This document shows positions 51,614 to 58,810 of a stretch of DNA of 64,000 nucleotides, piece after piece. The notes under the pieces are model-generated. The model saw only the letters and a program-made list of their open reading frames with translations, was not told where the DNA came from and did no database searches. The first letter of the stretch is position 1; each line of letters begins with the position of its first letter. Location: positions 984,366-1,048,365 of the forward strand of contig JBBPEB010000017.1 in the NCBI GenBank assembly GCA_039096225.1, read 5' to 3'. Source of the stretch: Blastocystis sp. Blastoise (Eukaryota; Protista; Bigyra: Opalinata). A program made the position numbers and the translations under genes.

Positions 51614-51961
51614 TTATTTTTCTTTATTTAGGTGATATAAGAAGAATTTATTAACGTTTAATTGTTCAGAATCTAAATCTATATTATCATAATCAAAATT
51701 TCTATATATATATAAAAGTTATTATTGTATATATATATATATATACAAGTTTCTAATATGTTTTATATTTTTTTGAAACATATTATATTCTTTGATAAAT
51801 TGTTTAATCATTCCAAATATAAGAATTGCATTGTTATTATCATAAGATTTATCACACTTTATATATAATATTTTTTTATTATATATATATATATATAAGT
51901 ATATATATATATATACTTTTTTATATTGAACAATAATTTTTGATGTATTAGTTTTAAATAA

Positions 51962-51999
<38 letters not shown>

Positions 52000-52325
52000 T
52001 AGATAGATAATTCTATTAAAATAATTAAATATACTTTTTGATTTGATTAATTATTTGATTGAGATATTTATCATTTCCATCTTCAATATCAAAGAAATTG
52101 TATATATTAATTGTAAGTGTTTTCTTTTTATCACCATTTGTCAGTTTATTAATTATTAAATAATATCTATCTTTATTTCTATAATAATAATAATAATAAT
52201 ATATATATATATAGATGAATACTTTAAATAGATTGTAAATATAAAAAATATTGGTGAATTGGAATTAAAATGAAATTGAATTTCATAAGATATATTATAT
52301 AGCTATATATATATGAATAATAATA

Positions 52326-52365
<40 letters not shown>

Positions 52366-52590
52366 AGAATCATTAATAAAATCATTATAATTATAGTAGT
52401 TATGAATGAATAAATTTATATTATTGGTTGTTACAATTTTGTTATAAACATTTAAATATAAATATAAATCAAATAATTCACTTGGAAAAGATCCTTCATG
52501 TAAGAATGTATACTATATATATTATATTATATTATATTATATTATATTATATTATATACATATTGTTTTTCATTAACTATTATCTCATTA

Positions 52591-52648
<58 letters not shown>

Positions 52649-55600
52649 TATATTATATAATACTAATTAGATTATATGTTTGTTTATTATTTATTTGTAT
52701 AGGATCATTTTCATATTGACTATTTTGACTATTATTATAACAACTAGCTGTATATATATATATATAAATATTATATTATTATATTATATACATTATATAT
52801 ATATATATTATATTATATTATATTATATATATATATACAAATATTAATATTATCATTTGAATAATTTATAGATAAATTTGATGATTGATTATGAATTTCT
52901 TTGCTTATATCATTATTTTCAGATAATGAAGTATAATCATATACATCAGTAGGTATTATATTATCAGCATTAATATTATCAATATTATATTTAATAGATG
53001 ATTGTATATTAGAATTATTAGCTGAAATTATATTAGCTGAAGATTGGTTATTATTTTGAATAACTTTAGATGCATATTCATTAGTATTTTGAAGTTTTTG
53101 GAAAGAAATATTATTACTATTACTAATTATTGGATTAGCCAAATTATTATTGATATTATTTAATAAGATATTAGGAGATGAAGAAATTATATTATCATTA
53201 CTACTAATTATTGGATTTAATGAATTATTGTAATTGATTGATGAATTAAGATAGTTATTATTATTTATTAATGGATTTGAAGAACTGTTATGATTAATGA
53301 ATGAATTAGAAGAATTATTATTATTTTGATTATTAATATTGATTGATGAATTAAGATAATTATTATTATTGATTGATGAATTAAGATTGTTGTTATTATT
53401 GATTGATGAACTAAGATAATTGATATTATTGATTGATGGATTAGAAGAATTGTTATAATTGATTGATGTACTAGATAAATTATGATTATTATTTACTATT
53501 GGATTAGATAAATTATGATTATTATTTGATATTGGATAAGAAGAATTGTTACAATTGATTGATGTATTAGATAAATTATGATTATTATTTGATATTGGAT
53601 AAGAAGAATTGTTATAATTGATTGATGTATTAGATAAATTATGATTATTAGTTGATATTGGATAAGAAGAATTGTTATAATTGATTGATGTATTAGATAA
53701 ATTATGATTATTATTTACTATTGGATTAGATAAATTATGATTATTATTTGATATTGGATAAGAAGAATTATTAATGAATGAATTAGAAGAATTATTATTA
53801 TTTTGATTATTATTGTTGATTAATGGATTAGATAAATTATTTATTATTTGCTTAGAAGAATTATCATTGATAGAATTATCACTATTGGAAATGATAGAAA
53901 TATTAAACTGATTAATATCTTCAACAGAATTATGAATACTTGGAATTGGAGAATAATAATTATTTAATATATTATTATTATTTAGATTATATTGATTATT
54001 TAATGAATCATTTATACTATAATTATTATCATTGTTATTAGAATTAAATGAAGGAAGAAGAAGAGGAGAAATAAGTTCTATACTTTTTTTATTTTCATCA
54101 TCATTCATACTATTGAACTTTATAATGGGAGATATAATTATAGGAGATATTTGTTGATCTGATAATTTAATATATTTATTTTCATTGTTACAATTATTTA
54201 TTTTAGCACTATCTTTTGATTCCATCTATGGGATATATATGATAATATGAATATACATGAATAATATGAATATGAATATATATGGATAATATGAATATGA
54301 ATATGAATATGAATATGAATATGAATATGAATACATATGGATAATATGAATATACATGAATAATATGAATATGAATATATATGGATAATATGAATATGAA
54401 TATGAATATGAATATATATGAATATGAATATATATGGATAATATGAATATGAATATGAATATGAATATATATGAATATGAATATATATGGATAATATGAA
54501 TATACATGAATAATATAAATAATATCGATAATAAAAATAATATGGATAATATTGATAATATGAATACTTTAGATGATATATCTTCTTTTGATTCAATATA
54601 ACGATTTATATCATAATTGAATGTACACTTTCTAACCAGTAATTCATATGAGCAAGTCTATATATATATATATATATATATATAGATATCTACATACTAG
54701 AGCTTCATGAATGGTTATTAGGTTACCATCAATATCTCTTTCTGGGACAAAATAATTCATTTCTTTAGCGAATTGTTTATCCAGGACATAATCAATGAAT
54801 ACTTTTATACCAAGCTCAGAAGTACATAAATCATTTAATTTAAAATCATTATTATTATATATAGTTTTATATTTTATATTTAGATTATAGTATTTGTCAT
54901 GAACATCATTTGTATGATGGCAACTTCTGATGAAACTTTGGCAATAAAGAGGATTAACACAATTTGTTCTTCCAAACCAAGTGGCAAAACAATGTCTATA
55001 GGAATAACCTGAGTGATCTTTAGGTATGTTACTAAATAATTTTTTTAATTGATGTTTACAACTATATAGGTATATAAGTTAATATATATATATATATATA
55101 TATATAGATTTAGATAAATATATATATATAGGTATACATAGTGGGATAGGTACTATATGTGAATTGGGATGCTACATAATTACTATTAGTATTTGGTTTT
55201 CGTATATATAGGAATAAATTTGTTGTATATTCAATATCATTATCTTTTAAATATTCACATATTTGATTTCTTATAATTATATATTTATCATATATCTTTT
55301 GAAATTTTTCGCATAAAATATATATATCAGGAAATTTTTTGCCGTCAGAATAAGGAATATTTCCATTCTTAGATCCTGTATGTATTATATATATATATTC
55401 TTTTTTAGTATTTTCATTTCTATATTTCTTTAGGTTTTCAAATAATTTCAAATTATATATATCATTATTTCTAAGTGGACAGCCTGTGCAAGTCTGAAGG
55501 AGATACATCATAAGAATCGTAATAGTATGAAATTTTTTTATATATATATCATTAATATTTTTCTTATTATTAATTTCTTCTATATATATATTAATTTTTT

Positions 55601-56067: not shown

Positions 56068-56386
56068 GATACAAAATTTGTTTCTCAGATAGAGAATATA
56101 TAGATATATCCGGTATTTTATCCTCAACCCCGTTTTCATAGAAGTCTCCAGTAATCACAGATTTAATTAAAGGTAAAGCATATTTTATAAATATTTTTGT
56201 ATTTGTATCCATTAGTAGAATTCTTTTTCTACTACACTTTCTTTGATATTTCCAATATTTTATTATATTATATAGGCGACTAATATCATCATCACTTAAT
56301 CGTTCTGGTAAAAAGCAACCAAGAAGATTTTTATTTATTTCTAATGATTTCTCACCAAGATTTATTTTTTCATTTAATTTTACAGG

Positions 56387-56443
<57 letters not shown>

Positions 56444-56745
56444 TTCTTAATTCTTGAATTGTATTTAATGATTCTTCATTATTGTTATTTTTCTTAAGTA
56501 TCTAGAATTATTATATTTTTAAATGTATATACATATAATATATATATAGATACATATCCTAATTGCAGATATATATAGGTTTGAAGATCCAAATCTTTTA
56601 CAAGTAGTGGGTTAGTAATAATCTATAAATTAAAATTAAAATAAATATGATTATTATTTAAATATATACATGTTTAGTATAGTTTGTATCCGAGTTCAAA
56701 ATTAAATTACACAAATTATTCATAAAATCCTGTATATATATATTA

Positions 56746-56802
<57 letters not shown>

Positions 56803-57169
56803 GATTTTAAATATACTTCATTATCATCAAGATTTATTTTGTATTGCTTCAAAAAATTATATATTTCTGATCTTATCTATTGAGTATATATATATATAAA
56901 TCAAAAAATATTATTTTAAAATATATTTATACTTCTTCATCTATTTCATTATTATTCTTAATTATATTTTGAATATCTATATATCGTATGAATTATAATA
57001 ATAATAATGCATTTAATATATAAACAATTATTACTTGATAATGTATATAGAAATGTTTTGAGTTCTTCTGAACTTATTAGAATTTCTTCATCATCTTCTT
57101 CTTCATTATTTTTAATTGCTAGTGGTATATAGTCTATTTTATTCTTATTTGATATAATTTTCCCATTAT

Positions 57170-57223
<54 letters not shown>

Positions 57224-58810
57224 GTGAGTCTATATCAATTACATTATCTTGAATTTCGTCATTATTCTTGTTAGAATTGAATTTATAAGATTGATTATTA
57301 TTTATCTTAATAGAATCATATTCTTTATTATCTATAGATTTCTTTTTTATTTTTATATTTTTATGTAGAATCGGTGAAAGAAATGATGCTTCAATAGGAA
57401 ATTCATGACAAGCAGGTAATTGTTTATTTATAGAATTGGGATTACATTGATTATTTAAATTATTATTAGATATAGTAGATTTAATAGAATTATTAGAAAT
57501 TGATATAGGTGGAGAAGGAGATGAATGAAAATTATTGATAGATGAATTATTATTATGATTATTATTAAAAGTTGATATAGGTGGAGAAGGAAATGAATGA
57601 AATTTATTGATAGATAAATCATTATTATTATTATTAGAAATTGATATAGGTGGAGATAGAGATGAATGAGATTTATTGATAGATAAATTATGATTATGAT
57701 TATTATTAAAAATTGATATAGGTGGAGAAGGAGATGTATAAAATTGATTAATAGATGAATTATTATTATTATGATTATTATTAAAAATTGATATAGGTGG
57801 AGAAGGAGATGATATAGAAGATGGAGATGAATTAAATTTATTGATACATGAATTATTATTATGATTATTATTAAAAATTGATATAGGTGGAGAAGGAGAT
57901 GAATGAAAATTATTGATAGATGAATTATTATTATGATTATTATTAAAAATTGATATAGGTGGAGAAGGAGATGATATAGAAGGAGATGAATTAAATTGAA
58001 TAGAATGAATAGAAGGAGATGAATGAAAATTATTGATAGATGAATTATTATTACGATTATTATTAAAAATTGATATAGGTGGAGAAGGAGATGATATAGA
58101 AGATGAAGATGAATTAAATTTATTGATAGATGAATTATTATTATTATTATGATTATTATTAAAAATTGATATATGTGGAGAAGGAGATGATATAGAAGGT
58201 GAAGATAAATTAAATTGAATAGAATGAATAGAAGGAGATGATATAGAAGGTGAGTAATATAGATCACTATTCATATATAATGGATTAGGGTCTTTAGATA
58301 AAGGACTAGGAGGAAAAGAAGAACAAGAAGAAGAATCATCGATCAAAATTGTATTAACTATATATATTATTTATGAAATGAAAATTATATTATTATTAAT
58401 GTATATATATATATATTACAATTATTATTTAATATTTTTTTATTTTGTTTTTGAAATTTATTGTTATTTGAAGATGAGATTTCTATTTTATTATAAGATA
58501 TTATTATAGTATATATATACTTTTTTTAGGTGTACTTGATTGACGAGTTTTTTCATAAGTAGAATCAATAGATAATTGTTGAGTTTCTAGTATATCATTT
58601 TTAAAACGATTGTTATTTTTTTTGATTTTATTACTTTTAGTATTCGCTATAATTTTAATAATTAATATATAGATTTATTAATAATAATATATAAATTATT
58701 TTGGTATTAGATACAATCAAATTGATTAATACTTATTTGGTTTTGCTATATAAATATAAATAATTTATTTATCATGTATTATGTATATTATATCATACAA
58801 TTCTTTTCAT
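51614..58810 (-). CDS. Intron-rich (~24 exons, ~1850 aa) tyrosine recombinase/integrase-family protein with Ser/Pro/Asn-rich and Asn-rich low-complexity regions
   Basis: Manual GT-AG splicing gives one uninterrupted frame from ATG 58810 (MKRIQNQIT..) to TAA 51616-51614, joining ORFs 57174-58346, 55985-56212, 55110-56006 and 52813-54225. Exons 56016-55138 and 55061-54698 carry LLQTCTGCPLRNNDIYNL (R), TGSKNG (K), YSYRHCFATW (xxxR-H), SCHHT (H) and HDKYY (Y). Confidence 0.8.
54226..54567. repeat. Intronic minisatellite of (ATATGA)n with higher-order GGATAAT/TACATGAAT blocks
   Basis: Fills a 342-nt phase-0 GT-AG intron of the recombinase gene. Confidence 0.85.

Follow-up and report, generated by a model that had tools for sequence, protein, structure and literature searches.

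The final 64 kb of contig JBBPEB010000017.1 (1,048,365 bp; assembly GCA_039096225.1) of Blastocystis sp. Blastoise, referred to below as the window, ends at the last base of the contig in a TTAGGG telomere, and its minus strand carries at 51614..58810 an intron-rich gene. No other large gene is present in the unit to which it belongs, a multi-copy subtelomeric unit bounded by telomere repeats. The non-repetitive core of the encoded protein resembles tyrosine recombinases of the Xer/integrase type. An earlier note on this DNA had described the gene as a tyrosine recombinase and had missed its main context; it is the telomere-bounded multi-copy unit around the gene that is of chief interest. We propose, with slightly less than even confidence, that the gene encodes the unit's own recombinase, whose core, descended from Xer/integrase proteins, would lie between two low-complexity regions. 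From the sequence we infer the fold, the catalytic activity, the DNA site and the movement of units driven by the protein.

A phmmer query with exon 10 in an exhaustive protein search retrieved a 99% identical protein of 1,795 amino acids (P0001), which a cluster look-up gave as KAK8802163.1, 'hypothetical protein WA158_006557 [Blastocystis sp. Blastoise]'; the only match of this query outside the cluster of P0001 (P0002) was a spurious repeat protein and was discarded. P0001 maps exactly onto the window as a gene of 1,795 codons plus TAA, with zero mismatches over 21 exons against the minus strand at 58810-51617 and the TAA stop at 51616-51614, and its outer coordinates are the same as those predicted in the earlier note. 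That note had joined four minus-strand open reading frames (ORFs) of a program-made list (57174-58346, 55985-56212, 55110-56006 and 52813-54225) into one large multi-exon protein, and all four are present there; its counts of ~24 exons and ~1850 amino acids, however, are replaced by 21 and 1,795. The 5' end of the gene does open with a 12-nt exon, as predicted, but the second exon measures 31 nt instead of the ~12-13 nt proposed for both. The predicted exon 55061-54698, with its YSYRH, HHT and KYY motifs, is identical to exon 11 of the public model, and these motifs lie in a stop-free stretch of the minus strand at 55078-54647. All 20 introns are of the GT..AG type, 40-342 nt long and mostly (TA)n; because these (TA)n-rich introns split the gene, only fragments of it appear in the bacterial-style ORF list. 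The gene was thus hidden from that list, as had been stated, but it is already annotated in GenBank, though without a function. Most of the introns within 51617-58810 are close to GT(AT)nAG microsatellites of 40-90 nt; their lengths vary among paralogues, and this variation is the source of most indels between gene copies. The G+C content of the window is 13-25%, which is extremely AT-rich, and the genomes of tortoise Blastocystis isolates have 21-23% G+C (Lind et al., Genome Res 2025, PMC12129017); Blastoise itself comes from a tortoise gut. TTAGGG is the telomere repeat of vertebrates as well, but the contig is not of human origin. The window was searched exon by exon, full-length and domain searches were made with the public P0001 and its parts, and the window exons were concatenated to confirm that their translation is P0001 and to count codon changes. 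Altogether, these data show the locus to be a true gene of Blastocystis sp. Blastoise, rich in introns and coding for protein.

The protein is organized around two repetitive regions, both of which had been correctly described from the window: exon 4 (57222..58357, minus strand) encodes ~380 amino acids of Ser/Pro/Asn tandem repeats (aa 57-435), and exon 13 (52839..54225, minus strand) encodes ~460 amino acids of Asn-rich tandem repeats (aa 1090-1551). Between them lies the non-repetitive core, encoded by exons 9-12 (54568..56389, minus strand; aa 540-1089), with a putative N-terminal SAM-like domain and a recombinase-like catalytic domain. The family consists of 13 gene models, all in the Blastoise genome, with lengths of 1,015-1,848 amino acids, and the aligned ones are 98-100% identical. 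The putative catalytic residues are invariant in all nine aligned paralogues. Comparison of the core exons in eight genomic copies revealed six nonsynonymous and seven synonymous changes, with no stops or frameshifts, and the nonsynonymous changes are all conservative (K547R, T619S, S746N, I1000L, K1003R and D1010N). Because 81% of possible single-base changes are nonsynonymous, these counts correspond to a dN/dS of ~0.2 (P 0.005). Moreover, the copies at three other loci (L003, L004 and L008) differ from the window copy by ~0.2-0.4% in the core exons and by ~5% in the introns. A dN/dS comparison among paralogues had been proposed as a check on the original prediction, and it shows that the core exons are under purifying selection.

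To place the gene in its setting, eleven loci were read, labelled here with L numbers, L001 being the window locus. In nine of these the gene is the first one from a contig end composed of (CCCTAA)n; 3.7-9 kb separate it from the telomere tract, its 5' end is on the telomere side and it reads inward. In the remaining two it stands ~50 and ~81 kb inside, where it is part of tandem copies or next to them. With nine loci starting in (CCCTAA)n, the gene is present at no fewer than nine chromosome ends, among them the two ends of contig 34. The sequence shared by the loci extends far beyond the gene. In the window it forms a subtelomeric repeat unit of 20.2 kb (42305..62489, minus strand), which is a 5'-truncated form and is 96-99.8% identical to units at other ends, and full-length units of ~23.3 kb are found elsewhere (L005, L022 and an internal copy in L004). 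The window unit meets the terminal telomere array (TTAGGG x ~250; 62487..64000, plus strand) at ...tatatgtagcaGG, and an interstitial telomere repeat (TTAGGG x ~4.5; 42276..42304, plus strand) stands at its inner end. No other ORF longer than 120 amino acids was found in the 20.2-kb unit or in the extra 5' part of the full-length copies, and a search of the unit for terminal inverted repeats returned low-complexity matches only.

The two ends of the unit behave differently. The inner end is precise: on the gene strand, ...CTCAGTATATA(T)9 leads into CCCTAA repeats, of which there are 2-9 or more; the same inner junction, ...TATAT(T)9(CCCTAA)n, is present at seven further loci. Beyond this junction lies a 5S rDNA spacer in the window, unrelated DNA in L002 and L005, the start of the next unit in L003, L004 and L007, and a unit truncated into exon 4 in L008. 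Contigs 34 and 4 contain tandem arrays of units, separated by 2-9 or more CCCTAA repeats. In L022, the left end of contig 6, the full-length unit gives way at 25727-26345 to at least 620 bp of telomere repeat, which runs to the end of the locus as read; an entire telomere here lies ~25 kb deep within the chromosome end. The outer end, in contrast, is imprecise: full-length units start at TCACGGGAATTTATCAAAT within a subterminal repeat, and other copies start from a few bases to several kilobases further in. The outer junction of the window, of the form CCTGCTACAT..., was also found at L002 and twice in L007, and the outermost kilobase of L003 is the tail of a further, nearly fully eroded unit. 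Head-to-tail arrangement, constant orientation, a precise inner end and ragged, repeat-capped outer ends together show that complete units were added, more than once, on the outer side of a telomere already in place, with later erosion and healing of the terminal copies.

Several further observations were made at the ends of the units. The outer end of the full-length unit in L005 (2109-2500) consists of repeats ~100-260 bp apart with AATAATCA[CT]GGGAATTTATCAAAT. Several telomere junctions fall at TAA|TCACGGG, where the TAA is common to the telomere repeat (microhomology). At L003 (16835-25563), and likewise at L006, L008, L021 and L023, the homology runs inward past the gene into a conserved trio made up of a 210-341-aa gene, a ~494-aa TLD-domain gene (PF07534) and a 600-800-aa gene; since the trio-bearing ends have no interstitial telomere tract, there are two versions of the unit tail. 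At L023 (1920-1960), a unit junction reads T15-AA-C26 instead of telomere repeats, with more telomere tracts 0.7-4.7 kb on, and is either an odd product of healing or an assembly artefact.

The likeness of the core to tyrosine recombinases was measured by hhalign against two templates. The first (A2) comprised nine recombinases, namely XerD, XerC, FimB, FimE, lambda Int, Cre and the P2, HP1 and P4 integrases; the second (A4) comprised 17, adding eight diverse plasmid recombinases that included IntI1, and is a set of prokaryotic and phage recombinases only, without Crypton, DIRS or Flp sequences. Against the nine recombinases, aa 760-1065 scored 25.1 (P 0.012), and the best of 34 natural controls scored 21.7. 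Against the 17 recombinases, the same segment scored 32.7-33.8 (P 3-5e-4; probability 33-39%) over 114-115 columns reaching from box I to box II, and the 34 controls scored 18.2 at most (mean 14.4, standard deviation 2.3). The control segments came from a neighbouring Blastocystis ORF, from other parts of P0001 and from Borrelia, phage and E. coli proteins. With the nine-recombinase template, the real score was reached by 0 of 241 shuffles; because the shuffle maximum (20.0) proved too lenient when set against real proteins (21.7), natural controls and the broader template were adopted. The first 540 amino acids of P0001 scored 14.7 (P 0.37) against the recombinase template. As the profile was broadened, the score of the query went up and those of the controls went down, as would be expected if the homology is true.

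The confident part of the alignment with XerD covers four segments. In exon 10 (55138..56016, minus strand), which encodes box I and a beta-hairpin, LLQTCTGCPLR827NNDIYNL is aligned to MLEVLYATGLR148VSELVGL of XerD, so that box I is TGCPLR827NNDIYNL with the R827 codon at 55472-55470, and YIYIIHTGSK861NGNIPY is aligned to VVRVIGK172GNK175ERLVPL, the hairpin being GSK861NGNIPY with the K861 codon at 55370-55368. LFLY follows over LFPS of XerD. In exon 11 (54698..55061, minus strand), which carries box II and the putative His and Tyr boxes, SGY957SYR960HCFATW is aligned to SPH244VLR247HAFATH, and box II (Y957-S-Y-R960-H961-CFAT) lies at 55006-54992. R827 is thereby paired with R148, Y957 with H244 and R960 with R247, and the first His of the HxxR motif is replaced by Tyr, exactly as the earlier note had read it. 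A relaxed threshold extends the alignment, at low confidence, to SCHH987TNDVHD-KY995Y over LLGH270SDLSTTQIY279T, pairing H987 with H270 and Y995 with Y279 (H986/H987 at 54919-54914 and Y995/Y996 at 54892-54887, minus strand), and a further low-confidence alignment upstream places CPKTLHNRIQEIRSIITYIERK over AENTLNAYRRDLSMMVEWLHHR, which is part of the N-terminal domain of XerD. Because the relaxed alignment adds the Tyr box, the four columns that are invariant in all 17 recombinases (R148, H244, R247 and Y279) are matched by R827, Y957, R960 and Y995, with Tyr replacing His244. A constellation of box I, box II and H-x8-Y is expected 1.2e-6 times in a 4-million-residue proteome of such composition; the pattern was taken from the consensus of known recombinases and written after the sequence had been seen, and the figure is a guide only.

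A number of results weigh against the recombinase reading. The column of the catalytic K172 of XerD falls on T858, and K861, three residues further on, is aligned to K175; the His and Tyr boxes are aligned at low confidence only; and the HH-suite probability of just 33-39% is below the level that is usually accepted. Scans of the exons and of parts of P0001 against Pfam, NCBIfam and PHROGs found no recombinase family even at E values up to 10, phmmer against PDB sequences was blank, and hmmsearch --max with the nine-recombinase HMM gave -1.8 bits, which 561 of 2000 shuffles matched and which is no signal. AlphaFold2, run without a usable alignment, returned a pLDDT of 34.2 for aa 540-1090 and of 36.7 for aa 795-1062, and Foldseek on the former model gave noise only. 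No match was found by tblastn against 50,697 phage records, two word-indexed searches returned paralogues of the same genome only, and no homologue outside its own genome was found among 1.84 billion representative proteins, although these collections may lack other tortoise strains. Because no relatives were found, no alignment is deep enough for structure prediction.

These results would suit a core that is no recombinase, with chance motifs in a fast-evolving subtelomeric orphan gene rich in low-complexity sequence: the curated profile libraries and PDB sequence searches are blank, hmmsearch is without signal, the HH-suite probability stays below 40%, the motif pattern was defined after the sequence was seen, and the AlphaFold2 pLDDT is 34-37. 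This explanation is improbable: it does not predict that a broader profile should raise the hhalign score of the core to 32.7 while the highest of 34 controls drops to 18.2, nor that all four invariant columns should be matched in order and at near-canonical spacing; the constellation of boxes, besides, has an expected chance frequency of ~1e-6 per proteome. Taken together, the weak-to-moderate profile similarity and the active-site layout support the tyrosine-recombinase reading but do not prove it, and the core is very probably a genuine recombinase-fold domain. The identification in the earlier note accordingly holds as far as hhalign (P 3-5e-4) and the boxes in register carry it, but finds no backing in the blank profile libraries and PDB searches or in hmmsearch. 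Its further suggestion of a distinct eukaryotic recombinase lineage is overstated, in that the family is known from a single strain, has no relative in 1.84 billion proteins and has an Xer-like box II; the RHxFAT of this box hints at a prokaryotic or viral source.

The substitution of Tyr for His need not abolish activity, because the active telomere resolvases ResT and TelA have Tyr at this position. According to a structural study of ResT, the second active-site Tyr (Y293 in ResT, Y363 in TelA) is common to both telomere resolvases, whereas no other resolvase, topoisomerase or tyrosine recombinase has it, and a role of Y293 in general acid/base catalysis is possible (PMC11317167). Kinship with protelomerases was considered and rejected (hhalign against ResT, TelN and TelK, P 0.6), and the Tyr of the Blastocystis protein is treated as convergent with that of ResT and TelA. 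The core has about an even chance of being catalytic still.

The proposal that the unit is moved by its own protein can be set out as follows. A two-domain core of Xer/integrase-type descent would have kept the Arg of box I, the Arg of box II, the His and the nucleophilic Tyr; the protein would cut units out or turn them into circles and link them to telomere repeats, perhaps with the aid of clusters of a palindromic 9-mer near the inner end. By this route (a), an excised circular unit would integrate into a telomere tract by recombination inside the telomere repeats, and the recombinase of the unit would catalyse or assist the reaction, perhaps assembled on the 9-mer palindromes as lambda integrase is on its arm sites. 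The outcome would be a unit that spreads from end to end and forms tandem arrays. The clusters comprise four palindromic groups of TCTACGATT / AATCGTAGA at 42412..42899, 110-600 bp from the inner end of the unit; all 13 exact copies of the 9-mer in the window fall in this interval, against 0.28 expected in the window, and one cluster is a perfect 35-bp palindrome (42865-42899). The clusters stand at an identical position of the tail in every L001-type unit read (also L002, L003, L004, L005, L007, L022 and L023) and are absent from the loci with a different tail (L006, L008 and L021). They could be a protein-binding or recombination site, or an origin.

This proposal is opposed by several features of the junctions. 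The palindromic clusters lie 110-600 bp off the junction and not on it; the outer ends vary, with an identical short-form junction in four places and with homology reaching beyond the unit at some ends; the junction pattern as a whole can be explained without a recombinase, as in the Y' elements of yeast; and no circular junction, excision footprint or empty site was seen in the loci read. The same features are what would be expected if the protein were a true recombinase relative that is now passive or domesticated, with the unit spread by homologous processes only, as yeast Y' is, through break-induced replication, unequal sister exchange or gene conversion between telomere tracts. The protein would then have another telomere role, such as DNA binding, or would simply be carried along. 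Strand invasion at interstitial telomere tracts would by itself give a precise inner junction and would copy the outer junction of the donor. The CCTGCTACAT junction shared by L001, L002 and two places in L007, the blocks of more than 20 kb that are 99.8% identical between ends, and the homology that runs past the unit into the TLD-gene region at some ends all fit homologous spread, and the loss of the first His and the displaced Lys fit a passive relative. The purifying selection on the core, however, is hard to square with a mere passenger, as are the remaining catalytic residues, which are intact in every copy examined; in addition, the recombinase-like gene is the only large gene of the unit, and ResT and TelA are active with a Tyr in place of the first His. 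Spread of a passive relative by homologous processes is a serious candidate, if a rather unlikely one.

Sequence alone does not separate route (a) from route (b), that is, break-induced replication or unequal exchange, and the recurring truncated junction type fits both. We favour route (a), or (a) together with (b), because the only conserved and selected gene of the unit is a relative of recombinases with a near-complete active site, and because the TATE elements of Leishmania provide a precedent. A broader version of the same proposal regards the 23-kb unit as eukaryotic mobile DNA of a new kind, which would insert only into telomere repeats by means of its own highly diverged, intron-bearing tyrosine recombinase; on present evidence this version is doubtful.

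The layout of the unit also recalls telomere-attached retroelements. Athena/Terminon-type elements form head-to-tail copies with a precise 3' end, reverse-complement telomere repeats on the centromere side and variable 5' truncation. The architecture of the Blastocystis unit matches this layout, including the truncation into exon 4 in L008, and a retroelement of the Athena/Terminon or HeT-A/TART kind could have arisen by a route (c), in which a transcript ending in ...U9(CCCUAA)n anneals to the G-rich overhang and is reverse-transcribed by an enzyme supplied in trans. Alternatively, the unit could be a decayed endogenous virus or episome that entered through telomere repeats of its own; virophages with tyrosine-recombinase integrases are present in the subtelomeres of the stramenopile Halocafeteria (bioRxiv 10.64898/2026.07.28.741278). 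The ORF lists of the unit, however, contain no candidate for a reverse transcriptase, an RNase H, a capsid or another viral gene, short ORFs having been outside the Pfam scan. Moreover, since the genomic copies retain 20 spliceosomal introns, copying by way of a spliced mRNA is argued against. A retroelement or viral origin is thus very unlikely.

Outside the unit, the window contains 5S rDNA. The last 5S rRNA gene (42011..42129, plus strand) does not belong to the unit, which abuts the 5S array; as only 147 bp separate this gene from the interstitial telomere repeat, a 5S rDNA array capped by a telomere once formed the end of the chromosome. In all, 28 identical 5S rRNA genes (86 bits each) were found at 6525-12047, 20088-20206 and 23957-42129, arranged as one lone copy and two tandem arrays, whose periods are ~900 and 910-980 bp and whose spacers are AAT-rich. 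The array is interrupted at 12048-23956 by ~12 kb whose left edge has a GC skew of opposite sign and which contains a perfect (TATTTC)54 (12718-13040), one 5S copy and no ORF longer than 120 amino acids. At 55-5517 (plus strand), an intron-less ORF of at least 1,820 amino acids runs off the start of the window; its product contains six He_PIG Ig-like domains plus an HRM hormone-receptor domain and resembles the ectodomain of a receptor of the adhesion/secretin type.

The chromosome ends of several eukaryotes are built or buffered by selfish elements, among them the Y' helicase elements, HeT-A/TART, Terminons and TATE. A DNA element that settles in telomere repeats by a tyrosine recombinase alone is apparently undescribed as far as literature was found, and no description was found in it either of this family or of any recombinase-only, telomere-specific element. 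If the protein is active, it would represent a new and very divergent eukaryotic recombinase lineage with an unusual active site, and a natural recombinase that may target the TTAGGG repeat or a 9-mer palindrome of defined sequence; its activity would also account for the near-identical 20-kb blocks seen at the ends of many Blastocystis chromosomes. The case suggests, too, that sequence drift driven by AT content can hide a common enzyme family from all standard profile libraries.

Among known systems, the Xer/integrase family (XerC/XerD, IntI1, lambda Int; PF00589) is nearest in sequence. The Blastocystis core would share with it the order and rough spacing of box I (TG..R..D/E-hydrophobic), beta-hairpin, LF strand, box II, GH/HH and Tyr, the signature xxRHxFAT of box II and possibly a SAM-like N-terminal domain. 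Unlike members of that family, however, the Blastocystis protein has no Pfam or NCBIfam match, has Tyr for the first His, a Lys displaced by three residues and insertions between boxes, and is a eukaryotic, telomere-adjacent protein of 1,795 amino acids with ~840 amino acids of low-complexity repeats and 21 exons. Its likeness to ResT and TelA is limited to the Tyr at the first-His position of HxxR; there is no profile similarity to ResT, TelK or TelN, and the Blastocystis ends are long TTAGGG arrays, not hairpins.

In lifestyle, the closest counterparts of the Blastocystis unit are TATE, Cryptons, yeast Y' and Terminons; Starships offer a further parallel. Starship recombinases carry DUF3435, and the Starship Voyager targets 5S rDNA (PMC10104507). 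As in Starships, the recombinase gene would stand first, at one end of a large unit; however, the Blastocystis unit has no Pfam match to DUF3435 and no evident cargo genes, is flanked by telomere repeats, and is adjacent to 5S rDNA only at the chromosome end in the window. In Cryptons the sole enzyme is a tyrosine recombinase; they may have introns, occur in few copies and have been proposed to move by way of a circular form, and the CryptonS of stramenopiles have terminal direct repeats of 5-6 bp (PMC3212892). The Blastocystis unit resembles them in that a recombinase-like gene is the only enzyme candidate and reverse transcriptase is lacking; it differs in being 20-23 kb long, bounded by telomere repeats and confined to positions at or near chromosome ends, whereas Cryptons are dispersed. 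Exhaustive protein searches returned no Crypton-like relative, Repbase Cryptons not having been directly compared. TATE of Leishmania braziliensis is a tyrosine-recombinase element that forms tandem clusters in telomeric hexamer repeats in a constant register and is grouped with DIRS retrotransposons (PMC6681497). Blastocystis units are likewise tandem and lie between ...CCCTAA and CCCTAA...., but they have no reverse transcriptase or RNase H candidate, keep 20 introns and show no detected sequence relation to TATE/DIRS. The endogenous virophages of Halocafeteria have subtelomeric tyrosine-recombinase integrases; the ORF lists of the Blastocystis unit, in contrast, hold no viral gene.

Terminons share the layout of the Blastocystis unit but have a reverse transcriptase. 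The yeast Y' element is a multi-kilobase telomere-adjacent unit in tandem arrays split by short telomere tracts, near-identical at different ends and with one long ORF, which encodes a helicase, and it is amplified by recombination. The Blastocystis unit is like Y' in lying between terminal and interstitial telomere tracts, in being tandem and in being near-identical among ends, and differs from it in that its product is recombinase-like and not a helicase. If the Blastocystis unit does prove to be a mobile element that inserts only into telomere repeats, an element whose protein has a ResT/TelA-like active-site Tyr would build and reshape the chromosome ends of this Blastocystis lineage, and would be the counterpart, driven by a recombinase, of Y' in yeast, HeT-A/TART in Drosophila and Terminons in rotifers.

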